Assembly (NCBI GenBank): GCA_002269645.1
Contig: NIVC01001786.1
Span: 1-40,277, forward strand
Direction of reading: 5' to 3'
DNA length: 40,277 nt
Origin: Macrostomum lignano
Lineage: Eukaryota
Below the pieces are notes generated by a model. It was given only the letters and a program-made list of their open reading frames with translations, ran no database searches and was not told the origin of the DNA. Made by a program: the position numbers and the translations under genes. Each line of letters starts with the position of its first letter. Positions within the stretch are counted from its first letter, which is position 1. Positions 4,936 through 35,752 of this stretch are shown here, piece by piece.

Positions 4936-5928
4936 CCTGGATTCTTGCATCAAGCTGACTTCTTGTTAGAGGATGCGGCTATCCAGGCAGAACGTATTTA
5001 CACTGCAAGCTAATTGAACAGTCAAAGGCTATCTAAAAAACAAGCTGGCGGATAGAAAAAAAAACTTTCTTGAGCTACTGCACTGTAATTACTTGGCGAA
5101 TTGGCTAATCCCATGGGCTAATTAGCTATGCTCTAATAGTCGTTGAAGCTGCAAGAAATCCTATTTCTCTCTCTCTCTCTTTCTGTCTTGCGAGTAGGTG
5201 AGGCCTTCTTTCTTTAACTTCACAGGAGAGATGGTCGGGTAGGGGGGGGTAGAGGTGAGTCCGCATTGAGCATGTTGCATTCCCCCTGTATATGCGACCC
5301 GCGACTTCGGCTACTTTGCTACTTTTCCCCAATAGCAATCCCAAATTTTTTTCTCTATGCGCGCCGTGTTTCGTGCAGCCCCTCGGTGCAGACTGGTCCG
5401 GTTAGTGGGATAGAATTTGTGCAGTAGATATATATATATATAAGGCTAAGACTCTGAAGGCTCAGCTCGTTCAACCTGCTAATTAAGCTGCTACTGCTGC
5501 TGCTGTTGTATCTTATTGATGCTGCTTTGAAGATTTCCCAGTGCTGCCTGTCTTCAGCTACCCCTGATTGGATGATTCGACTGACTTCAGTGATGAAGGA
5601 GAGGGTGGGGTAGGTGTAGGGTAAGCTTTTGAATAGACAAAATGCTTGGGCAAATAGTTGCTAAGCTGAACTGATTCTCATAGATGAGGAAGGTTGACGT
5701 TTCTATCTGAGTGGAGACTGTTTCCCTATTCTTTTTCGGTCTTTTTCGCTGCTTCTAGAGTTGTAAGTGCCAGATTTTGTCTACTGCTTTTACCTATCAC
5801 AATACTGTCTAGAGAGTAGCTTGCATCTCACAGAGCGAGCAGGAATTCTCAGGTATAGATGAAGAGAGAGTGTCTCACAGAGAGGAATTCTCAGGAATAG
5901 GTAGGGAAGAGAGTGTCTTACAGAAAGG

Positions 5929-7378
5929 AGAATTCTCAGGCACAGGTGATAGAGCAGTAGAGGGAATTCTCAGGCACAGGTGATAGAGCAGCAGAGGGGA
6001 ATTCTCAGGCACAGGTGATAGAGCAGCAGAGGGGAATTCTCAGGCACAGATGATAGAGCAGCAGAGGGGAATTCTCAGGCACAGATGATAGAGCAGCAGA
6101 AGGGGAATTCTCAGGCACAGATGATAGAGCAGCAGAAGGGGAATTCTCAGGCACAGATGATAGAGCAGCAGAGGGAATTCTCAGGCACAGGTGATAGAGC
6201 AGCAGAGGGGAATTCTCAGGCACAGGTGATAGAGCAGCAGAGGGGAATTCTCAGGCACAGGTGATAGAGCAGCAGAAGGGGAATTCTCAGGCACAGGTGA
6301 TAGAGCAGCAGAAGGGGAATTCTCAGGCACAGATGATAGAGCAGTAGAAGGGGAATTCTCAGGCACAGATGATAGAGCAGCAGAAGGGGAATTCTCAGGC
6401 ACAGGTGATAGAGCAGCAGAGGGGAATTCTCGGGCACAGGTGATAGAGCAGTAGAGGGAATTCTCAGGCACAGGTGATAGAGCAGCAGAGGGGAATTCTC
6501 AGGCACAGGTGATAGAGCAGCAGAGGGGAATTCTCAGGCACAGGTGATAGAGCAGCAGAGGGGAATTCTCAGGCACAGGTGATAGAGCAGCAGAGGGGAA
6601 TTCTCAGGCACAGGTGATAGAGCAGCAGAAGGGGAATTCTCAGGCACAGGTGATAGAGCAGCAGAGGGGAATTCTCAGGCACAGGTGATAGAGCAGCAGA
6701 GGGGAATTCTCAGGCACAGGTGATAGAGCAGCAGAGGGGAATTCTCAGGCACAGGTGATAGAGCAGCAGAGGGGAATTCTCAGGCACAGGTGATAGAGCA
6801 GCAGAAGGGGAATTCTCAGGCACAGGTGATAGAGCAGCAGAAGGGGAATTCTCAGGCACAGGTGATAGAGCAGCAGAGGGGAATTCTCAGGCACAGATGA
6901 TAGAGCAGCAGAAGGGGAATTCTCAGGCACAGGTGATAGAGCAGCAGAGGGGAATTCTCAGGCACAGGTGATAGAGCAGCAGAAGGGGAATTCTCAGGCA
7001 CAGATGATAGAGCAGCAGAGGGGAATTCTCAGGCACAGGTGATAGAGCAGCAGAAGGGGAATTCTCAGGCACAGGTGATAGAGCAGCAGAGGGGAATTCT
7101 CAGGCACAGGTGATAGAGCAGCAGAGGGGAATTCTCAGGCACAGGTGATAGAGCAGCAGAGGGGAATTCTCAGGCACAGGTGATAGAGCAGCAGAGGGGA
7201 ATTCTCAGGCACAGGTGATAGAGCAGCAGAGGGGAATTCTCAGGCACAGGTGATAGAGCAGCAGAGGGGAATTCTCAGGCACAGGTGATAGAGCAGCAGA
7301 GGGGAATTCTCAGGCACAGGTGATAGAGCAGCAGAGGGGAATTCTCAGGCACAGGTGATAGAGCAGCAGAGGGGAATT
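5929..7378. repeat. 35-36-bp minisatellite (GCACAGGTGATAGAGCAGCAGAGGGGAATTCTCAG), ~40 copies
   Basis: Near-identical tandem units ending ~125 bp upstream of the acceptor of the FAM53-like exon. Confidence 0.97.
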
Positions 7379-7503
7379 AATGTCAGGTGAGACAGTATTT
7401 AGCCCAGGCTAACGCAGGTGGGCGGATATGAGCAGGTTATCTGGGCATCTGATACGGAAAACCGCAACCATTATTCTCTCTCTCTCTTTCCTGTCCCCTC
7501 CAG

Positions 7504-8220
7504 CCAGCCCGCCGCCCAGCCGGAACCCTGTCTAATTTGTCGCCAAAGTCTCTGGACGCCGCCGCTGTTAGCGGCGGTTCAAGCGGCGCCCAAAGCGACG
7601 GCGCCGCCTCGTCCGCCAGCCCGCCGCTGATGCCGCCGAAACGTCAGTGCCGGTCCCTGTCGCTGCGCGGCGGCCAAGCGCTGGTCCGCCCGGTGCCGCT
7701 CCGGCCGGCCTGCCAGCGGCTCGCCGCAGGCCTCGACGCCATCAGCCTTCGAGTCGACTCGCCGACTGCGGCCACCGCCGCCTCCTCTCGTCGTCGGCGA
7801 ACCCCCAGCGGAAGCGGCGGCAGCGGTGTCGGAGACGTCATCGGCGGTGTCCGGCCCAGCGCGTCGGACACGCGGCTCAGCGAGTCCTCGGACGAAGCCT
7901 TGGCGGCGGCTGCGGCGGCCAGCGCCACGGCCCGGCTGCAGGCCGAACTGCATCCGCTGCCCAGCACCGGGCGCAGCTTCCTTGTTGGCCTGCCGCGCAT
8001 CGCCGACACGTCGCTACCGGCAACGCCGACAACGCCGGCGTCCGGAGTCTGCGGCTTCGGCTTCGCTGTTGCCGGCAGCCGCGGTCGTGACTCGCCGACC
8101 TCCTGGTCGGATCGGGCACCGTCCGAGAGCAGCTGCGGCGCGGAAGACCCAGACGATGCCGAGGACAGAACAGGGGGAGGCGGCGAGCTCGATGTTGATG
8201 AGATTGAGCAGGACTTGTAG
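7504..8220 (+). CDS. FAM53: Terminal coding exon of a FAM53-family (Simplet-like) protein; upstream exons not identified
   Basis: Polypyrimidine tract plus CAG acceptor at 7501-7503, then an open frame to TAG at 8218-8220. Contains PPKRQCRSLS (FAM53 hallmark P.KR[HQ]CRSLS) and C-terminal GELDVDEIEQDL (FAM53 end motif ~GELD[IL]EQIENN). Recognised from memory, not by search. Confidence 0.65.
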   Translation, partial: PARRPAGTLSNLSPKSLDAAAVSGGSSGAQSDGAASSASPPLMPPKRQCRSLSLRGGQALVRPVPLRPACQRLAAGLDAISLRVDSPTAATAASSRRRRTPSGSGGSGVGDVIGGVRPSASDTRLSESSDEALAAAAAASATARLQAELHPLPSTGRSFLVGLPRIADTSLPATPTTPASGVCGFGFAVAGSRGRDSPTSWSDRAPSESSCGAEDPDDAEDRTGGGGELDVDEIEQDL

Positions 8221-8980
8221 TGAGCTTGAGAGCTCGCCAAGCATCGGTCCTTCATCCCTCCTCAACTCCAGCCTCTGCGCTTCTTCAGCCTGTTCCGCTG
8301 CATTCCTTTGCTTGGACTTGGAGCCAGACCAAAAGCTCAGATACAATATGTTTATAAATAACTTGTCAGTATAGGCTTGCTTGCAACAGTTTCTCTCTAC
8401 TTTGAGTTCAGTAGCAAGGATAGAACAATGTTCCTATCTCTGTAGTGTATATTTTAGTGTAAAGTCGGCCTTTAAAAAATTTCTAAAGTGACTTGCAGAC
8501 TGCAAACAGCTTGCCATCGGTGCAGCCGTTAATGTACACCAGCCAGCGTCGCTGAGAATGTACAATGTACATCGGCAGGCAGCTTATAGGCTGGAACACA
8601 TCGAGAAAGGCAATAAAAAATTTGCTGTGGGGTGTTAGCAGAGATTTATGCGATTGGAGTCAGAGAGCCTATAAATGAGTGTTGTCTTGAAAATACATTT
8701 AAATGCTTCAATTTAACTTACTACTGAACTGTAAGTAGATTACACGCAAATGTTCTGAGTGGCCCATCTTTAGTTATTATAATATAGTCATTACAGAAAT
8801 CTGTAATTGCCAGTGTTGCTTTCTATTGTTGGCTATTTGTCCATAAAGTCTGTATTGCTGTTTATTGCTAGCATTCGATTTTACAGATGCTTTGCCTGCT
8901 CTGTCGGTTCTTCATTTGTTTGCCTGTTGTTTATGAGGAATTGAGGCGCTACTGTTTATGACTGCTGTTAGTAGCCATGA

Positions 8981-11257
<2,277 letters not shown>

Positions 11258-11873
11258 TGAATTCTAGTTGGAGAAACCAGCTAAACTTATCAACTGTTTC
11301 CATATTTGTTTTAGTTTGAAGATTTTTTTAAATTCATATTTGCTTCACTCAGTTGGCAGTTTGCTGATACAGAATGCACTTTAATAACAAATTACCTGTG
11401 CACTGCGTCATCAGTTTTAGTCCGCTCAAAAGTTCAAGCTGCAAGTGTTCCAGTGTTAACTAAGATTACTCCTGTTGCATTTCAAAGCGACTGTCTGGTC
11501 TCTGCCCCCATCAATGTTGAACAATTATGAATAGCAGTAACTATGCTTTCATGACTACTCACTCCAGTAGCATGACTCGGTAAATGCTTATTGTTTATTT
11601 GTTTCATTTATTTATTTCTAGTTATTTCCGGCTAATTTTCGTAATTTTTTATGACTATTTATATACTACTGACTACTGACTACTGTCATATTTGCCTATA
11701 CAAGTCTGGCAGAGTTATTGTCATAAACGGCAGGGTTAATTAGCAGATACTCTCTGATCTATTCGTAAATGGTGTTCCATGCAACTTTGCTGATTAAAAC
11801 TGCACCCAGAGTAATCAACTTTGAGAAAATTATTTATCACCTTATTGACAGTCCTCTACGTATCTTATGTACA

Positions 11874-16640: not shown

Positions 16641-17105
16641 CTACCAGGGTCGCCAGATCGAACCTTGACAGTTGTGGGACTGCGCCTGCTGCGGACGTTG
16701 ATGCTGCTGTGATGCAGCCGCTGGTTGACGGTTGCCAACATCAGCCAAAGCTGGTCGCTGCTGCTTCTGCTGCTGTTGCTGCTGCTGCTGCCCAGTCCTG
16801 GCTCCCAGGTAAGCCAGCGTCATCTCCAAGATGTCCAGCTTCTCCAGCTTCTGCGCCTGAGCTGGCGACATGTCTCGGCCGAGTTCGCTTGCTAGCAGCA
16901 CAGTCTTGAGCTGCTCCAGGCAGTCGTTGATCCTCGCTCGCCGTTTGCGCTCCATCAGCTGTTTGGCCAATCGCCGATCCCCAATCTGTGAGTCCTCTGT
17001 AGCAGCTGCGAGCGAGTGCAGCATGTCTGCTGACTCCTTTTCTGCTTTTCGACTACGAAGATTGCTCCGATGCGATTTCTGCTTCTGCTGTTGCTGCTGT
17101 TGCAT
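16641..17105 (-). CDS. HES: Intronless HES/hairy/E(spl)-type bHLH repressor with C-terminal WRPW, 154 aa, no Orange domain
   Basis: ATG to TAG ORF with bHLH RRLAKQLMERKRRARINDCLEQLK...KLEKLDILEMTLAYL and terminal WRPW (Groucho/TLE-binding). TATA-like box upstream and AATAAA downstream on the - strand. Confidence 0.92.
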   Translation of the reverse strand: MQQQQQQKQKSHRSNLRSRKAEKESADMLHSLAAATEDSQIGDRRLAKQLMERKRRARINDCLEQLKTVLLASELGRDMSPAQAQKLEKLDILEMTLAYLGARTGQQQQQQQQKQQRPALADVGNRQPAAASQQHQRPQQAQSHNCQGSIWRPW

Positions 17106-21805: not shown

Positions 21806-22033
21806 CTCGATTGCAATTTTTTTACTCTCTCAATGACCCATTCTATCATTATCAAGTCATTTTCTGTATTATTCTGTTGGATAAATCGATGCTACGTTAA
21901 TATTTTATAATTCCCAACATAAATGCTACTGCCAAGTAGTGGGAAGCGCCTATTTTCTGTTCTTTACTGCCATTCAATGTCACAATATAAGCCCATTCCC
22001 TACGAGCCTCGGCATCTCAGCTTTCCCCACTTG

Positions 22034-22034
<1 letters not shown>

Positions 22035-22105
<71 letters not shown>
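22035..22105. repeat. (CAA)n tract, distal part of the RTE (GTT)n tail and 5' flank of the Ingi-like element
   Basis: About 24 perfect CAA units between the TSD copy (22025-22033) and the first base of the inner element. Confidence 0.95.
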
Positions 22106-22203
22106 CCCGTCCTATGACCTGGCGGCCTCTCGTAGACCTAAACATAGGGATACTCGGCGGACGGGAGCCGGAGACCACTCCGGACAAACGAACAGCTGGG
22201 TCA
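22106..22203 (+). ncRNA. Candidate HDV-like self-cleaving ribozyme at the element 5' end (non-canonical L3)
   Basis: P1 CCCGTCC 22106-12 / GGACGGG 22159-65; P2 TGACCTGGC 22115-23 / GCTGGGTCA 22195-203; P3 GCC 22125-27 / GGC 22156-58; P1.1 CT 22129-30 / AG 22166-67; P4 CCGGAG / CTCCGG 22168-83; CGAA at 22189-92. Folded by eye only. Confidence 0.4.
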
Positions 22204-22244
22204 ACTCGGAAAACCTGGGGATAGAAAGAAGTTATTACAACAGG

Positions 22245-25200
22245 ATGGAAGCGGAAGAACCGGAGCTCAGAACGGGCTGGCGAGCGAGTGAAGTCATCCC
22301 AGTGGCTAGTGACGTAGAGAGAAATCCAGGCCCCTGCGCCAAATGTGGCAAGGTGCTCACTTCGGGGCAAACCCCCACCAACTGCACGGAGTGCGATCGA
22401 GTGTTCCATGGATCGTGCACAGGGCTCACCCGTGGCATCCAAAAGAAAGTCAGAGAAGCAAATAGAGAGTGGCGCTGCCCCCATTGCACCCTGGACAGAG
22501 AATGGGAGAAGGAAGACGCCGACGAAGACCGTAAGCGGTGGGAAGCAGCGGCGGAGGAAATCAAAAACGGTGAGAGGTGTGCAGCACCGGGCTGCAAGAG
22601 CAAACTCAAAGTGACGAAGGTTATTGCGCGCTGCAAAGAGTGCATGGGCCTCTTCCACAACAAGTGCACTCGTGCTAGCAGAGCCTGTTTGGATGGCGAA
22701 GTGAGGAGAGGCCTCTGGACCTGTATGCACTGTCTAAACCGCCTGGTCAGGATGGCGGAGGAGAAAGCAGCGACAGAAGAACCGAGTTCTACCTGTGGAG
22801 CGAGTAAAGGATGGAAAAAAGAACCCAGGAGGTTCCTGCGAATATTGCAGTGGAATGCTGATGGAATTAACACCAAGAGAGCCGAGTTGGAGGGCTTCCT
22901 GGAGGCCCACGATATCGACGTGGCTGTTATTCAAGAATCTAAGCTCTGTGAAAATAGCGAGACTCCACGCTTTAGAGGCTATACCACCCTGCGAAAAGAC
23001 CGTCTAGAAATCAGGCGGAGTGAAAGAGCTAAGGGAGGAGGCCTCATCACGCTTGTCAAGCACAACATCCCGTTCAAACGTCTGCTGGCGTGGAAGGGAG
23101 GCGTCACGGAAGGCATGAGAACGGTTATCGATCTCAACAAGAAAGAGCGTGTCGTAGTCACCAATGTATACCGCCCTCCAGTCAGAAGCGTGGAAGGAGA
23201 GGATGCAAGAGAGAGCGAAGAGGTCTGGAGTTGGATGCGTCCCGACAGCCGCGAGATTGTCCTTGGAGATTTCAACCTGCATGCGGAGGAATGGGGAGCC
23301 ACCCCAGACCAGAGCGCCTTGGACCGTAGAGACTCAAGGGAGCTGCTGGACTGGATTGCCGAGTTCGACTATCAGATCCTAAACGACGGCGCGGCCACGC
23401 GTACGGACTGGAGGACCGGCAACGACAGCGTCCCAGACGTATCCCTGGCGGCTTCAAACCTGGGGGTACGCTGTCAATGGGAAGTCACCCGCGGCCTCAG
23501 CTCCGATCACCACCCCATCATCATCACTGTGGCGACGGAGCGGGAAGTTAGGGACAGTCGAATACGGCTGGCTTGGGCGTGGAAGAAAGCGGATTGGTCG
23601 TCTTTCAGAAAAAAGTGCGCTGAAGCGTTTGAGGCCACCCGAGCGGATCCATTGCGCAGGAGACCAAAGACCTTAGTAGAGCGATGGTGCAGGCAGCTGA
23701 AGAGGGAGTGCCTAAAAAGAAAGTGTCAAGGCGGAACATGCCCTTTTGGGACGAGGAGTTGACAGAGATCCAACGTCAGAGAGACGCAGAGACGCGCAGG
23801 GATGAGGACAGCCGCGCGCGTTGGACCGCGGCAAACAAGCAGCTGAACGCGCTGATTAGAGAAAAGAGGCTCAGCTTCTGGAAAGAGCATGTCAAAAACC
23901 TTAAGGAAGGAGACGACGGCAAGAACACCTGGAGAACCATCAAAGCGCTTCACTCGGTTAAAGAGGAGAACATACCGAATGAGATCATCGTGAAAGGAAA
24001 CCATGAAGCGAGGACAGATGAGGAAAAGGCGGCTGTGTTCGTGGACATGTACGCAGGAAACAGCAAGGTCAAGATTGAGAAAGAGGACAGGAAGCTCCGA
24101 GCCCAGGTGGCAAAAGGACTCCGTGAGTACAATGAAGCTGCCGACTTCGGGGTGCCGTTCGTCATGGAGGAGCTCACGGACGCGCTAGAGCAAATGGCCT
24201 CGGATAAAAAGGGCGGAGTCGATGGCATTGAGGTGCGTTTTCTTAAAAATCTGCCGGACCGGTGTTTGGAAAGATGGCTCAAGTTATTCAATAGAAGTTG
24301 GGCGGAGCATCTCTGCCCCGGTACGTGGAAGAAGGCAGAGATAATCCCGCTTTTGAAATCCGGAAAAGATCCGAAGAAACGGGAGTCGTACCGCCCAATC
24401 AGCCTCACATCGGCCTGTGCAAAGCTGATGGAGCGCATGGTGACAAACCGCCTCTATTTCTGGATGGAAGAGAACAAGATCATTAAGAGCTGGCAGGCGG
24501 GCTTCCAGAGAGGCCGCAGCACCGAGGAACAAGTTATTCGACTTGTCCAGGACATCCAAGACGGATGGGAGGCGAAAAAGCCACTCAAGACCATCGCCAT
24601 AACCCTGGACTGCTCTAAGGCGTACGAGAGGGTATGGAGAGTCAAACTGATAAACAGGTTGATGGAGGAAAGAGCTCCGGCGCACCTGGTTAAATGGTTT
24701 GCCAGCTTTCTGGAGGGTCGTCAGGCAAGAGTTAGAGTCGGAGACGGTCGCAGTAAATGGAGGAGGTTCCAGGAGGGCCTCCCCCAGGGAGCAGTGAGCT
24801 CGCCGGCCCTGTTCCTTCTGTATGCAAACGGCTGGAAGGACCTCGAGGAAAAAGGAGTGGAATATGGAGGATTCGCCGACGACCTGGCTATCTGGACGTC
24901 GGATCAGACCGTTGAAGGCGCCTGTGACCGCATGCAGCGAGCGCTCAACAAGATCGAGCGCTGGGCCCGCGACCTTAAGATCGAACTAAATCCGCAAAAG
25001 TGTGAAGCATGCGTTTTTAGCAGAGCGCCGAAGGATAAGACCATAGACATCGGCCTGAGCATCGCGGGCCACCCCATCGCCACGGTCAGGAAGCTGAAAT
25101 ACCTTGGTGTCACCATCGATGGAGGTCTGACTTTCACCGAGCATACCGACCAGGTGGCCCAAAAGATGAAGCGCAGAGCACGAGCGATCCGGGTCCTGGC

Positions 25201-26533
25201 GAATACCAGCTGGGGGTGGAGGACGGCTGACCTGCTGCTGGTGTACAAGAGCATCGTGGAAAGCTGTGTCTGGTATGGAGCACCGGCGTGGCTCCCCTGG
25301 CTGTCTAGCTCAAATTTTGATAGGCTTGAACGGACCCAAAGGGATTGTCTCAGAGCGGCGGCTGGACTGGTGCGCTCCACGACGATCGAGGCGGTGTACC
25401 TGGAGACCGGAGTCGAACCTATCAGGGATCAAGGCAGGAGGAGAGCGCTGATCGCGTGGGAAAAAGCCTGTCGAGCACCGGAGGGCGACCCGCTTAGGAG
25501 CTGCAGTGAAAAACATGTTACAAGGCGCCTCGCCGCAAATAAAGGCTGGAGGGAACAGGCTAGAGGAGCCTGCCTGGAATGGTCCCAACATCCTCGTGAA
25601 AGTTTTATCCGTAAGAGACATCCGCCCTGGAAAAGGTTGCAGAGAGACGGAGTTGTGATCTCCACGGAGCTGATCCGAGGTGGTAAGAAGGGGGATGAAA
25701 ACCTCTTGGAAGAAGCAGAAGCTACCATCGAGGCTTGCGGTGTCTTCGAAATGCGGCTGTTCACTGACGGCTCTGTGGGCGAGGGGCAGCAAAATGGAGG
25801 AGCGGCGTGTGTGGCCTTCACGGATAACGCCAGAGAAGTCCGTAGAGCGGCGGCGGGTAAGTTCTGCAGTTCGCTGGTGGCGGAAGAAGTGGCGTTAGTG
25901 TTAGCGCTGGATTTTATCGAGGAAAAAAAGCCCCGCAGTGCTCTTATCTGCACGGACAGCAAGTCCGCACTACTTAAACTCAGAGGCGAAAAGACACCCC
26001 TGTCGGCCAGAATGTACAACACCATCGGGAGGCTGCGCTGTGCCAGCCAGAGGACAGAGATCTGGCTACAGTGGATCCCGAGTCATATCGGTATCCAAGG
26101 AAACGAAGAGGCTGACCAGGAGGCAAAGGCGGCTGGAGGGATGTGCCAGGATCACACGGCCATGGACTGGAGTTGCGTCAAGAGGCAGATCCTCAAGAGA
26201 GGTGCCAGCTCGTCCTGTGAAGACAAGAGATTGGAGGCCGTGTTTGGAGAAAAGAGGGTGCTGTGCTCGGTAAACCGTAAAACGGAGGTGTTGATGGCTC
26301 AACTGCGTTGTGGGCACTGCAAGCATACCAGCTATTGGAGGCAGAAGGTGGGCCTGGACCCGGCCGGAAACTGCTCTTTTTGCGACGAAGAAGAATCGAA
26401 AGACCACTGGATGACGTGTAGTAGATGGGACTCTATCAGGATTCGGTGTGGAGTGGAAGGAATAAGATCGCTTCAAGACGAGCCCAAGGTTTTAAAATTC
26501 CTTCAGCTGGCCCACCCTCGGTGGCTCAGCTGA
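22245..26533 (+). pseudogene. LINE polyprotein: 2A peptide, tandem PHD fingers, APE endonuclease, reverse transcriptase, RNase H, CCHC; interrupted by one -1 frameshift near 23633-23655
   Basis: DVERNPGP (22311-22334); C4HC3 PHDs (22335-22487, 22578-22733); APE motifs LQWNADG, IQESK, LGDFNLH, SDHHPI; RT motifs YRPISLTS, GFQRGRST, GLPQGAVSSP, FADDL, KYLGVTID; RNase H FTDGS...AE...TDS...WIPSHIGIQGNEEAD; C-terminal CSFCDEEESKDHWMTC. Confidence 0.92.
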
Positions 26534-26559
26534 ATGGTTTTCTCGCCGAAGACACACAC

Positions 26560-26599
<40 letters not shown>

Positions 26600-26600
26600 G

Positions 26601-26647
<47 letters not shown>

Positions 26648-26680
26648 AAACAACAACAACAACAACAACAAAAACAACAA

Positions 26681-27166
26681 ATTACGCAGCCCCGCAAGCA
26701 AATTCACAGAGCAGGGCGCGTCGCAGAACCTGAGAGCGAACGAAGTCCGCGCCTTTGGCGGTGTCAGGCGCCCCGGCGTCGCGTAGGAGGCAGTCCACGT
26801 ATCGATGGGTTTGGGCCTGACCCCGCCTGAGCGGGCCCTGCAGGGTGAGCAGCAGGACGTCCTGAACAGGTTGGGGGCAGTAGCCCTCGGCCCGGATCAC
26901 GTGGCCCGCCAGTTGAAGTCGCCGCCGGCGCAGGATGATGGACGGGCGCTGCTGCAGATCGTGCAGGGCCTCGGTCCCGACACTCTCGTCAGCTCGAAAG
27001 GCCGCACGGAGCAGCCCTGAGTGCGCCGAGTCCAGCTGCCGCTCCAGCGTAGCCGTCAGCGTCCACGTCTCGGCGTTGTAGATTAGGACGGTTTCGACCA
27101 CCGCCTGCCACAGCCGAGCCCTCTGGCGCTCTTCGGACTGGACGACGGCCCGGATCGAACGGAAGG
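26681..27166 (-). mobile_element. 5'-truncated RTE-type LINE 3' fragment with (GTT)n tail
   Basis: - strand frame AFRSIRAVV...VETVLIYNAETWTLT...LRRRRLQLAGHVIR...LRRG matches the post-RT C-terminus of RTE-clade proteins. TAA stop at 26682-26684 is followed directly by (GTT)n. CCCCACTTG is duplicated at 22025-22033 and 27167-27175. Confidence 0.8.
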
Positions 27167-27655
27167 CCCCACTTGGCATCTCAGAATTCCCCACTTGGCA
27201 TCTCAGAATTCCCCACTTGGCATCTCAGAATTCCCCACTTGGCATCTCAGAATTCCCCACTTGGTATCTCAGAATTCCCCACTTGGCATCTCAGAATTCC
27301 CCACTTGGCATCTCAGAATTCCCCACTTGGCATCTCAGAATTCCCCACTTGGTATCTCAGAATTCCCCACTTGGCATCTCAGAATTCCCCACTTGGCATC
27401 TCAGAATTCCCCACTTGGCATCTCAGAATTCCCCACTTGGTATCTCAGAATTCCCCACTTGGCATCTCAGAATTCCCCACTTGGCATCTCAGAATTCCCC
27501 ACTTGGCATCTCAGAATTCCCCACTTGGTATCTCAGAATTCCCCACTTGGCATCGCAGAATTCCCCACTTGGCATCTCAGAATTCTCCACTTGGCATTTC
27601 AGAATTCCCCACTTGGCATCTCAGAATTCCCCACTTGGCATCTCAGAATTCACCA
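27167..27655. repeat. 22-bp minisatellite (GGCATCTCAGAATTCCCCACTT), ~22 copies
   Basis: Tandem units starting exactly at the RTE 5' junction. One diverged unit remains at 22011-22033. Confidence 0.96.
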
Positions 27656-31746: not shown

Positions 31747-32358
31747 ATGTCGCAAGCCGGGCCGGACAGCTCCAGCGCAGAGTTGAAGGTGAAACGGGCC
31801 AAACTTCGGGTGCTGCAGTTCGCCACGTCAACCAGCGGTCACGGATACAAGAATGTGGCCGAGTCTGAGTCCAGAATCAAAACCATTTTGTGGTCCCTGC
31901 TGCTCACTGGAGCTATCTGCGGCCTGTCCTACCACCTGGCCCTGATCTCAGTCAAGTACTTCGCCTACCAGAAGCGGGTGATCACCAACAACGTGCTGGA
32001 GCCGCTGCACTTTCCCAAAGTGGCCATCTGTCCCACCAGCTACTTTTCCAGCTACCTGATGACCCAGCCGGGTAACTGGGTAGTGCGCGACCTGCACAAT
32101 CAGCTGTTCAACTTGACCTCGCCGTATTTTGGCGTAGCCGAAGAAGATCGTCGAGAGGCGGTGGCGGACAAGGCTCTGCTGGACGCCTACCTGGAGGGCC
32201 GTCTGCCAGAGCTGGCCAATGTGACCACCGCTCTGGACTCGGTGATGCTCACCTGCAGCTTCAACTGGCGCTCGTGCAGCGCGGCGAATTTCACTGCGGT
32301 GGCCTCGGATCGGTACGGCATCTGATTTGTGTTCGAGCCGACTGGATCCAGCGCCTGG
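31747..32358 (+). CDS. DEG/ENaC (ASIC/FaNaC-like) channel, exon 1; contains in-frame TGA at 32323-32325
   Basis: F..STSGHG pre-TM1 HG motif, TM1 (ILWSLLLTGAICGLSYHL), YF.Y, LHFPKVAIC, MLTCSFNWRSC...RYGI*FVF (= YGNC[FY]TF). Donor TGG|GTGAGC at 32358/32359, phase 0. Confidence 0.85.
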
Positions 32359-34151: not shown

Positions 34152-35052
34152 GCCTTGCGAACCCGCCCGCAGGCCTACGGCGGCTACGACAACGGCCTGA
34201 CCCTCACGCTGGCCTACGAAGGCCTGAAGGACAGCTACTTCAGCACCTCGACACGGTACACTCGGGGCTACGCCTTCCTGCTGACCCCTTACGACAAGTT
34301 CACCAACTTCTTTCGGGCGGCGCCAGTGCCGGCGCCCGCTGGCCACCGCACGGACATCGGCCTGATGGTCGAGCGCACCAAACGGATGACCACCATCAAC
34401 GACCCGTGCACCAAGCACCATCAGGCTGTCAACTTTGACGGCTCCTCCGAGAACTACGACTACGACACGGTGAACTGCGTCGACATGGCGTTGAACTCGG
34501 CGATCAAAACCGCCTGCGGCTGCGTCACGGACAACCTGCCGATTCCGCTGCCGCTGCAGCGGGACAGACGCTGCAGCCGGTTGAATTTCACCCGACTGGC
34601 CGGGGCGCCGCCGCGGATCAACTCCTTCGACCGGATGATGCTGGACAAAGCTTGCGTCGACAATCAGCTACGATTTAACGACGATCTGACAGTCTACGGA
34701 CGGCTGGTGTCCGCCTGTCAGAAGGCCTGCAAAGAGGAGGGCATTGTGGCCCACGCCGCCACAACGGCTCTGCCAACAACCTCTGCGGGCAGCGGCGGCA
34801 CTGCTGGCAGTCAGTGGACCGGCGACGTTGAGCGACTGCTGCTGCAGACCTGGCAGAGGGCGCCCGACCGGTCCTTCATTCCAGCGCTGATCAACGTCAG
34901 CTCAGCAGGCGGCAAGATGCTCAGCGGTATATCGGCCAGCGACCACGTGGTTCAAGCCAACATCTACTTCCTGTCCTCTAGGGTTACCCTGTTCGAGGAG
35001 GACTGGCAATATCCCATTGAGAGCTTCCTGTCTGAGGCTGGCGGAGTGATTG
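34152..35052 (+). CDS. DEG/ENaC channel, exon 2 (extracellular palm/thumb, pre-TM2)
   Basis: Acceptor CTTCATAG| at 34151, phase 0, matching the exon 1 donor. Contains G..NGLTLTL, a Cys-rich thumb (C...ACGC...C...C...CQKAC..E), VQANIYF and YPIESFLSEAGG. Donor ATTG|GTGAGC at 35052/35053, phase 1. Confidence 0.9.
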
Positions 35053-35077
35053 GTGAGCTGACCAGGCCGGGAAGTTG

Positions 35078-35752
35078 GTTGGGGATATGTACAGTTGGTT
35101 GAGGATATGTACAGTTGGTTGGGGACATGTACAGTTGGTTGAGGATATGTACAGTTGGTTGGGGATATGTACAATTGGTTGAGGATATGTACAGTTGGTT
35201 GGGGATATGTACAGTTGGTTGGGGACATGTACAGTTGGTTAAGGATATGTACAGTTGGTTGGGGATATGTACAGTTGGTTGGGGACATGTACAGTTGGTT
35301 GAGGATATGTACAGTGGGTTGGGGTTATGCACAGTTGGTCGGGGATATGTACAGTTGGTTGGGGATATGTACAGTTGGTTGGGGACATGTACAGTTGTTT
35401 GGGGATATGTACAGTTGGTTGGGGATATGTACAGTTGGTTGGGGACATGTACAGTTGGTTGAGGATATGTACAGTGGGTTGGGGTTATGCACAGTTGGTC
35501 GGGGATATGTACAGTTGGTTGGGGATATGTACAGTTGGTTGGGGACATGTACAGTTGGTTGGGGACATGTACAGTTGGTTGAGGATATGTACAGTGGGTT
35601 GGGGTTATGCACAGTTGGTCGGGGATATGTACAGTTGGTTGGGGATATGTACAGTTGGTTGGGGACATGTACAGTTGGTTGGGGACATGTACAGTTGGTT
35701 GAGGATATGTACAGTGGGTTGGGGTTATGCACAGTTGGTCGGGGATATGTAC
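35078..35752. repeat. 20-bp intronic minisatellite (GGGGATATGTACAGTTGGTT), ~33 copies
   Basis: Tandem units within DEG/ENaC intron 2. Confidence 0.96.

Follow-up and report, generated by a model that had tools for sequence, protein, structure and literature searches.

Target-specific long interspersed nuclear elements (LINEs) are rare outside the R1 and Tx1 clades and the clades with a restriction-type endonuclease, and serve as models for safe-harbour integration. For L1 and Alu, older retroposons offer preferred landing sites in their A-rich tails, where insertion takes a fixed orientation owing to a loose endonuclease preference for TTTT/A. LINEs specific for microsatellites include Waldo, found in (ACAY)n, Mino in (AC)n, Kibi in (TC)n, Koshi in (TTC)n, Dong in (TAA)n and Togen in (TG)n (PMC3812793, PMC4640811). 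Hotspots in which transposable elements lie within one another provide a general precedent for nesting in another retroposon (PMC2836564), and (GTT)n tails have already been documented for RTE elements, mostly in plants (PMC6007223, Table 2). Insertion primed by pairing has been proposed for other tail-matching LINEs (PMC6007223, PMC3812793), and R1Bm is cited in one of these reports as an element that may use pairing between its RNA 3′ end and the target (PMC6007223). Here, a 40,277-nt stretch of the genome of the animal Macrostomum lignano (contig NIVC01001786.1), referred to as the window, is analysed; it contains a full-length LINE flanked on both sides by CAA repeats and followed by a fragment of an RTE-clade element on the opposite strand.

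The locus probably arose by two successive retrotranspositions, of an RTE element first and then of a CAA/TTG-preferring LINE into the tail of the RTE. It is likely that the family of the inner LINE has a real but incomplete preference for CAA/CAG repeats, and the target appears to be the repeat whatever its source, RTE tails being one supplier and not a dedicated target.

The composite locus and its two elements

Repeats in the window were delimited with Tandem Repeats Finder (TRF) and protein domains with Pfam. An exact 9-bp repeat, CCCCACTTG, present at 22025-22033 and 27167-27175, brackets (CAA)24, the LINE on the + strand, a second CAA tract of about 40 units and the RTE fragment on the - strand. 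There are 22 occurrences of CCCCACTTG in the window, against 0.59 expected by chance, as the motif is part of the repeat unit of a 22-bp minisatellite located at 27167-27655; the left copy falls within a degenerate unit of the 22-bp array (GGCATCTCAGCTTTCCCCACTTG, 22011-22033). Joining the left and right flanks restores a regular 22-bp array, which shows that the composite was inserted there and that the array is the original target of the RTE. The exact 9-bp repeat abuts both ends of the RTE with its tail and fits a target-site duplication, although in a 22-bp array a 13-bp target deletion looks identical to a 9-bp duplication.

In the simplest history the RTE was inserted first, since the 9-bp repeat brackets the RTE together with the whole CAA/TTG tract and not the LINE alone, and since the RTE 5′ end is separated from the right flank by no CAA. 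In the longer tract the tail belonging to the LINE itself is joined to the proximal portion of the (TTG)n tail of the RTE, with a boundary that cannot be placed. Within the 40-kb window, the only CAA/TTG tracts of at least five units are the two flanking the LINE, and no second copy of either the inner LINE or the RTE fragment was found there.

The outer element is represented by an open frame on the - strand running from 27164 down to 26685, with 55-84% identity to the C-termini of RTE-like proteins; the matches include many short proteins associated with reverse transcriptase (RT), among them proteins of M. lignano. Its stop codon TAA (26684-26682) runs straight into TTTG(TTG)n, leaving no 3′ untranslated region (UTR) in this copy. 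The fragment comprises the C-terminus only, and the RTE class was tested on two relatives, L071 and L081, with RT references as labelled in PMC10294476. Against the RTE/BovB reference L081 scored 139 bits and L071 122 bits, and at most 89 bits were obtained against RTE-X, Ingi, Nimb and CR1. L081, on a 3.4-kb contig, is an almost complete compact element (~3.3 kb) with a single open reading frame (ORF) for an apurinic/apyrimidinic-type endonuclease (APE) and RT; ribonuclease H (RNase H) is absent. All three relatives have (GTT)-type tails, namely (GTT)6 in L071, (TTG/TTA)~5 in L072 and (GTT)6 in L081, following a 3′ UTR of 35-75 nt. These sequence comparisons support both the RTE membership of the outer family and its (GTT)n tail. 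None of the three was found to carry a nested LINE.

The inner LINE is a full-length element of 4454 bp (22106-26559, + strand), in which Pfam recognised a PHD finger, Exo_endo_phos (APE), RVT_1 (RT) and RNase_H. Its coding sequence is split into two segments, which comparison with relatives resolves into one ORF cut by a 1-nt frameshift near 23645-23655; the frameshift is specific to this copy, since the ORFs of relatives are continuous. Segment 1 carries a 2A-like motif DVERNPGP (22311-22334), the PHD finger (amino acids 31-81), a second Cys/His-rich finger (about amino acids 112-163) and the APE domain (amino acids 201-426, ~22845-23522). Segment 2 contains RT (amino acids 230-478, ~24371-25117), RNase H (amino acids 690-817, ~25751-26134) and a C-terminal CCHC-type motif, and ends in a TGA codon at 26531-26533. 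The frame is open from the first nucleotides of the element, so that there is no room for an ORF1. The window and three relatives (L001, L002 and L003) share the 2A-like motif, as DVERNPGP or DVEKNPGP, and the element's 3′ end reads GCCGAAGAC(AC)n.

The best protein match of the inner LINE is PAA87688.1 of M. lignano (locus L001, 68% identity), followed by environmental and unplaced sequences with 42-51% identity, which are termed here the close clade. In BLASTP comparisons its RT scored 148 and 144 bits against two sequences labelled Ingi, 135-117 bits against Nimb, 112 bits against CR1 and 62 bits against RTE, the reference set being one that lacked trypanosomatid, Vingi, I, R1, LOA and Tad1 elements. 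In a small neighbour-joining tree of RTs the clade of the inner LINE fell, with weak support, within neither Ingi nor Nimb, and searches against PDB sequences, which matched only L1 ORF2p and R2, gave no help for clade assignment. Judged by these comparisons and by its predicted organisation (single ORF, N-terminal 2A, APE-RT-RNase H, and a putative 5′ ribozyme of the hepatitis delta virus (HDV) type), the inner LINE is assigned to the I group and is Ingi-like in architecture.

The original prediction, made from the DNA sequence of this stretch, had described the 9-bp repeat and the bracketed series of CAA, LINE, CAA and RTE, and its coordinates are exact. Its nested architecture, with the LINE inserted into the tail of an older RTE, agrees with the placing of the 9-bp repeat around the RTE and the whole tract, and the (GTT)n tails that it expected of the RTE family were found in the relatives examined. 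The name Ingi-like that it gave to the inner element holds for the architecture; the proposed RT tree did not separate Ingi from Nimb. The features of the locus are listed in the table.

Features of the composite locus in the window (positions in the 40,277-nt stretch)
Feature	Positions	Strand	Basis and remarks
Left flank	22011-22033		degenerate first minisatellite unit, ends in left CCCCACTTG; read against TRF consensus CCCCACTTGGCATCTCAGAATT
(CAA)24	22034-22105	+	TRF: (ACA/CAA)24, 24.0 copies of period 3, 100% pure; read as distal RTE (TTG)n tail, possibly lengthened during or after LINE insertion
LINE 5′ end, putative HDV-like ribozyme	22106-22200	+	helix pairing, P1 covariation
LINE ORF segment 1 (505 amino acids)	22245-23762	+	ORF and Pfam; 2A, PHD, second finger, APE
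LINE ORF segment 2 (949 amino acids)	23684-26533	+	ORF and Pfam; RT, RNase H, CCHC-type motif
LINE 3′ UTR	26534-26559	+	short, ends GCCGAAGACACACACA; conserved in M. lignano relative
(CAA)~40	26560-26681	+	TRF: 26560-26680, 40.3 copies, 94% pure; three interruptions: GAA, AAA, AAA
5′-truncated RTE-clade fragment	26682-27166	-	last ~160 codons and TAA; protein matches
22-bp minisatellite, 22 units	27167-27655		TRF; begins with right CCCCACTTG

Minisatellites make up about 45% of the window (a rough sum of TRF rows), with more than 20 arrays of period 14-37 bp and up to 100 copies, several of which sit in introns or flanks of host genes for a bHLH protein and an ASC channel. The former is represented by an ORF with a bHLH domain at 16644-17105 on the - strand (Pfam HLH, E=3e-14), and the latter by two exons of an amiloride-sensitive/DEG-ENaC channel at 31747-32322 and 34155-35099 on the + strand (Pfam ASC, E ~1e-15). 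With host genes on both sides, the LINE/RTE pair is therefore intergenic.

Tails and 5′ junctions of related LINEs

All six close-clade loci of 42-47% identity with a readable 3′ end terminate in (CAA)5-8, located after a UTR of 10-35 nt (L003, L073 with two tails, L074, L075, L079 and L080). For comparison, a CAA tract of at least four units was present in only one of 67 loci of distant relatives (up to 35% identity). When collections of metagenomes, prokaryote genomes and viruses were scanned with the clade alignment, the results were distant relatives (up to 35% identity) or nothing, and they served as controls only. The only distant relative with both ends, L004 (31% identity), has a (CAC)5(AAC)2 tail (5500-5540), no repeat upstream and the 2A motif GDIETNPGP, and tail motifs seem to vary between sublineages of the group.

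Nine 5′ junctions could be read in the window and its relatives, and a CAA or CAG repeat abuts the element at seven of them. The repeat was supplied by the RTE tail described above in one case, by a polyglutamine (polyQ)-coding exon of M. lignano in another, by a (CAA)8 tract in a third and by the tails of diverged sister elements in the remaining four. In every repeat-flanked copy CAA is on the sense strand.

In the window the 5′ junction is formed by (CAA)24. In L001 it is GAGCAACAGCAACAGCA followed by CCC, and at the 3′ end (AC)n runs into CAGCAACAG(CAG)n of the same host exon. Read in codons, the upstream host sequence is ...GAG CAA CAG CAA CAG CA, joined to CCC of the element, and the downstream sequence is CAG CAA CAG (CAG)5 CCA. 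The host is a Shg1/COMPASS-like gene of M. lignano, with the insertion in its polyQ-coding tract and a possible 11-bp duplication, CAGCAACAGCA. The protein annotated at this locus (6001-11372 of NIVC01000221.1; PAA87688.1, UniProt A0A1I8J2C8) is a chimera of two host-gene exons and the LINE ORF, a result of the in-frame position of the LINE within the host polyQ tract. A second cluster member that came up in the search for an empty site of this insertion proved to be the same locus.

The other junctions involve the clade's own tails, apart from that of L003, whose 5′ end follows (CAA)8. In L080 a full-length copy starts directly after the (CAA)8 tail of another copy, in L073 two 5′-truncated copies follow, one after each (CAA)5 tail, and downstream of L003 a related truncated LINE follows (CAA)8. 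Neighbours in these tandems differ considerably from the adjoining copies, with 58-67% and ~40% amino acid identity. This divergence favours separate insertions over a single template jump, and argues against assembly collapse too.

The CAA run ends in CAG at three junctions between a tail and a truncated copy (L003, 4449-4453; L073, 137-142 and 4187-4192), and this terminal CAG may indicate where the nick occurs or where the RNA ends at its 3′ side. L073 (GCA_038533115.1, JBCAZM010000112.1) derives from a metagenome-assembled genome labelled 'Pseudomonadota bacterium'; the contig is a eukaryotic contamination of the bin, since it consists wholly of head-to-tail eukaryotic LINE copies separated by (CAA)5. 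Two contigs, L002 (4263-4405) and L074 (1-60), end in long perfect palindromes, for one of which Rfam gave 'MIR1437'. These palindromes most probably arose in assembly, and the 3′ end of L002 and the 5′ end of L074 were left out as flanks. The 3′ flank of L075 (3431-3760) contains a 25-bp inverted repeat (CCTCCTGATCAGCAAGCAAGCTTAC and its reverse complement) followed by a tRNA-like GGTTCGATCC motif, and may be a short interspersed nuclear element (SINE) or a miniature inverted-repeat transposable element (MITE). A candidate target-site duplication of L075, TCAGCAA, was ruled out, as it is not adjacent to the tail.

The putative 5′ ribozyme and the open leader frame

The 5′ ends of the window LINE, L001, L002 and L003 align with one another and match the nested double pseudoknot of HDV-like ribozymes. 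The plan comprises a 7-bp P1 from nucleotide 1, a 3-bp P3 with an L3 loop of about 7 nt, directly followed by the 3′ strand of P1, then P1.1 and P4, with P2 closing the structure. In the window, P1 is formed by 22106-22112 with 22159-22165, P2 by 22118-22123 with 22195-22200, P3 by 22125-22127 with 22156-22158 and P4 by 22168-22173 with 22178-22183, and J4/2 contains CGAA at 22189-22192. In the M. lignano relative L001 the ribozyme measures 77 nt by our own parsing.

The P1 strands of the four sequences are CCCGTCC/GGACGGG, CCCACTC/GAGTGGG, CCCAGTC/GGCTGGG and CCCCCTT/GAGGGGG. Pairing of P1 in the four-sequence alignment is 100%, three of its pairs show compensatory changes, and the value falls to 41-54% once the partner strand is shifted by 1-3 columns. 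MAFFT could not register the L3 insertion of the window or P1 of L080; pairs were accordingly counted on a partial alignment of four sequences and the remainder helix by helix. In L080, a fifth element, the hairpin GCC-TTCTCGT-GGC is the same, but the P1 that surrounds it (GCAGCAC/GTGCTGC) is unrelated. P2, P3 and P4 pair in all four sequences, the CGAA ahead of the 3′ strand of P2 is likewise conserved in all of them, and for three of them minimum free energy folds contain P1, P3 and P4. The sequence of L3, TCTTCGT, is similar to the L3 of HDV. A permissive motif scan for ribozymes returned 281 mostly spurious hits and was used only to recover the four known sites. Taken together, the first ~77-95 nt of the inner LINE are a putative HDV-like self-cleaving ribozyme, and the activity of both this fold and the 2A motif is predicted from their sequences.

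In all four sequences the LINE frame is free of stop codons from the first nucleotide through the ribozyme to the 2A motif. In the window and L001 the stop-free stretch extends from the upstream repeat to the 2A motif (22035-22334 and 6947-7170, respectively), and in both the phase of the leader frame is the one in which CAA/CAG encodes Gln. Ahead of the first ATG, the openness of the frame reaches only weak significance (shuffle P 0.06-0.13 per sequence, the sequences being related), and in L003 the first ATG lies inside the ribozyme (nucleotides 9-11). The M. lignano gene model fuses a host exon to the LINE ORF, and for this reason it may be speculated that ribosomes translating a polyQ ORF upstream could enter the LINE, the enzyme then being released by 2A.

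Mechanism, alternatives and relation to known elements

The following course of events can be proposed. A 5′-truncated RTE-clade LINE would have entered the - strand after the first 22-bp unit of the minisatellite, leaving the 9-bp duplication and a (TTG)n tail, and the full-length 4.45-kb Ingi-like LINE of the I group would then have entered that tail. The APE would nick the TTG strand of CAA/TTG (and CAG/CTG) repeats, and the exposed ...TTG-3′ end would pair with the (CAA)n tail of the RNA and prime reverse transcription. Priming from the TTG strand would thus place the LINE always co-linear with CAA and antisense to a TTG-tailed RTE, with the repeat left on both sides. Transcription could come from upstream, the ribozyme would cut the read-through RNA exactly at the boundary between repeat and element, and the N-terminal 2A would free the enzyme from whatever was translated upstream.

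Several observations weigh against this account. The sample of junctions is small and, the window apart, comes from relatives, and at two of the nine, those of the full-length L002 and the truncated L075, there is no CAA flank; the specificity can therefore amount to no more than a preference. LINE-after-LINE tandems make up four of the seven positive junctions, and template jumping by RT could also produce them. The origin of the (CAA)8 upstream of L003 cannot be told, as only 7 bases are readable beyond it. L001, the closest relative, has essentially no CAA tail of its own and adjoins the host CAG/CAA directly, and no empty site was found for this copy, the host N-terminus having matched one protein present only in UniRef and without a contig. 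The tails of the RTE relatives have about 6 units against about 64 in total in the split tail of the window, so some of these units must be the product of addition or expansion. As regards the ribozyme, the L3 loop of the window carries an extra hairpin of ~21 nt (~22134-22154, with a CCTA-AACA-TAGG core) that is missing in four relatives and may inactivate the window ribozyme or mark a local subfamily, and HDV-type families of Rfam gave no match at E<=10 in the window or three relatives.

The CAA-free and tandem junctions would also be expected if a (CAA)n-tailed LINE had no target preference and nested here by chance, the tandems having arisen by template jumping or unequal recombination, and young transposable elements nest in older ones above expectation in any case (PMC2836564). 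This explanation is nevertheless unlikely. The CAA tracts at the locus offered a target of ~0.1-0.2 kb, the only one of its kind in 40 kb, which a random insertion would hardly hit; an independent relative, L001, lies within a CAG/CAA-coding tract of its host and is flanked by the repeat at either end; and the tandem neighbours belong to diverged families and are not copies of one RNA. The original prediction that the element ends in (CAA)n was borne out by the close-clade loci, L001 excepted, and its suggestion of (CAA)n targeting stands as a tendency seen at most junctions, from which L002 and L075 depart.

The same prediction went further and suggested that the LINE may be steered into RTE tails, as a hyperparasite for which such tails are a safe harbour; in the strong form of this reading, most copies would reside in them. 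The window itself shows a LINE in an RTE tail, and the complementary (GTT)n tail of the RTE family matches the forced antisense orientation. Nevertheless, this strong reading rests on this single locus: among the nine junctions this was the sole insertion seen in an RTE tail, the remaining copies with repeat flanks being in a host coding repeat, in tails of sister LINEs and in one CAA tract of unreadable origin, and none of the three RTE relatives carries a nested LINE. A strategy of this kind is accordingly quite improbable.

It is also very improbable that the order of insertion was the reverse, with the LINE already in place when the RTE entered the (CAA)n tail of the LINE, priming on it with a (UUG)n tail of its own. 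Target choice of RTE elements is reported to follow the terminal microsatellite (PMC6007223), and this geometry yields opposite orientations as well, but it leaves unexplained both (CAA)24 upstream of the LINE and the lack of CAA between the RTE 5′ end and the right CCCCACTTG, and the 9-bp repeat would bracket the wrong unit. Finally, although long pure microsatellites are hard to assemble and palindromic contig ends occur in two relatives (L002 3′, L074 5′), a misjoining of unrelated sequences through long CAA tracts is barely credible, since it is not expected to leave flanks that restore one regular minisatellite with a matching 9-bp repeat, and the same architecture is seen in independent assemblies.

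Two successive retrotranspositions, guided in the second step by a preference for the repeat, thus remain the favoured account. A bolder version, which we regard as doubtful, would have a widespread Ingi-like clade homing to transcribed CAA/CAG repeats and coupling target choice, RNA processing and translation in one design. Its targets would be polyQ-coding exons, the clade's own tails and RTE tails, and the element would live off host read-through: the ribozyme would release the RNA, ribosomes coming from an upstream polyQ ORF would read in phase into the element, and 2A would release the enzyme. If the preference for CAA/CAG repeats is real, the lineage would offer a natural system for studying how a microsatellite RNA tail and an APE jointly choose a site, and polyQ-coding repeats of host genes may be at risk from such LINEs.

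The closest described elements in organisation are L1Tc/ingi, which share with the inner LINE a single ORF without ORF1, an N-terminal 2A and the APE-RT-RNase H order (PMC3383444, PMC3185411, PMC3894237), as well as an HDV-like ribozyme within the first ~77 nt, which in L1Tc trims co-transcripts (PMC3383444, PMC3185411). The hosts differ, being trypanosomatids for L1Tc/ingi and a flatworm-like animal for the inner LINE, and the RT tree did not place the clade of the latter inside Ingi. The tail of L1Tc/ingi is poly(A) and not (CAA)n; to our knowledge these elements lack PHD fingers, unlike the inner LINE, and we know of no microsatellite targeting by them. If the predicted features are functional, this would be a second Ingi-like case of a 5′ HDV-like ribozyme and 2A together, now in animals.

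Microsatellite-specific LINEs enter a simple repeat in one orientation and are flanked by it on both sides (PMC3812793, PMC4640811), a pattern that the inner LINE and most of the readable junctions of its relatives resemble. Waldo, Mino, Kibi, Koshi, Dong and Togen belong to the R1, Tx1/L1, R4 and NeSL clades, unlike the inner LINE with its I-group affinity, and the preference of the latter looks incomplete, its targets including coding polyQ tracts and the tails of other elements. Neither a CAA/CAG target nor an I-group or Ingi-like lineage appears in the lists of microsatellite-specific LINEs in PMC3812793 and PMC4640811, and literature searches found none. A CAA/CAG-seeking lineage of the I group, if confirmed, would add a new target class for LINEs.

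The rDNA-specific R2 resembles what is proposed for the inner LINE in its dependence on read-through transcription of the target and in the release of its RNA by an HDV-like ribozyme at the 5′ end (PMC3383444), and differs in having a restriction-like endonuclease and a unique 28S site with no microsatellite. As to the outer element, plant RTEs have (GTT)n ends like that of L081 (PMC6007223, Table 2), whereas animal RTEs in the same report mostly end in (CAA)n or other motifs; the outer family, also from an animal, uses (GTT)n. Compared with the insertion of L1 and Alu into A-rich tails, the present locus is distinct in that its repeat is a trinucleotide and its two LINEs, with tails complementary to each other, come from unrelated clades, and suggests that the tail of one LINE family can become a landing pad for an unrelated family whose tail is complementary to it.

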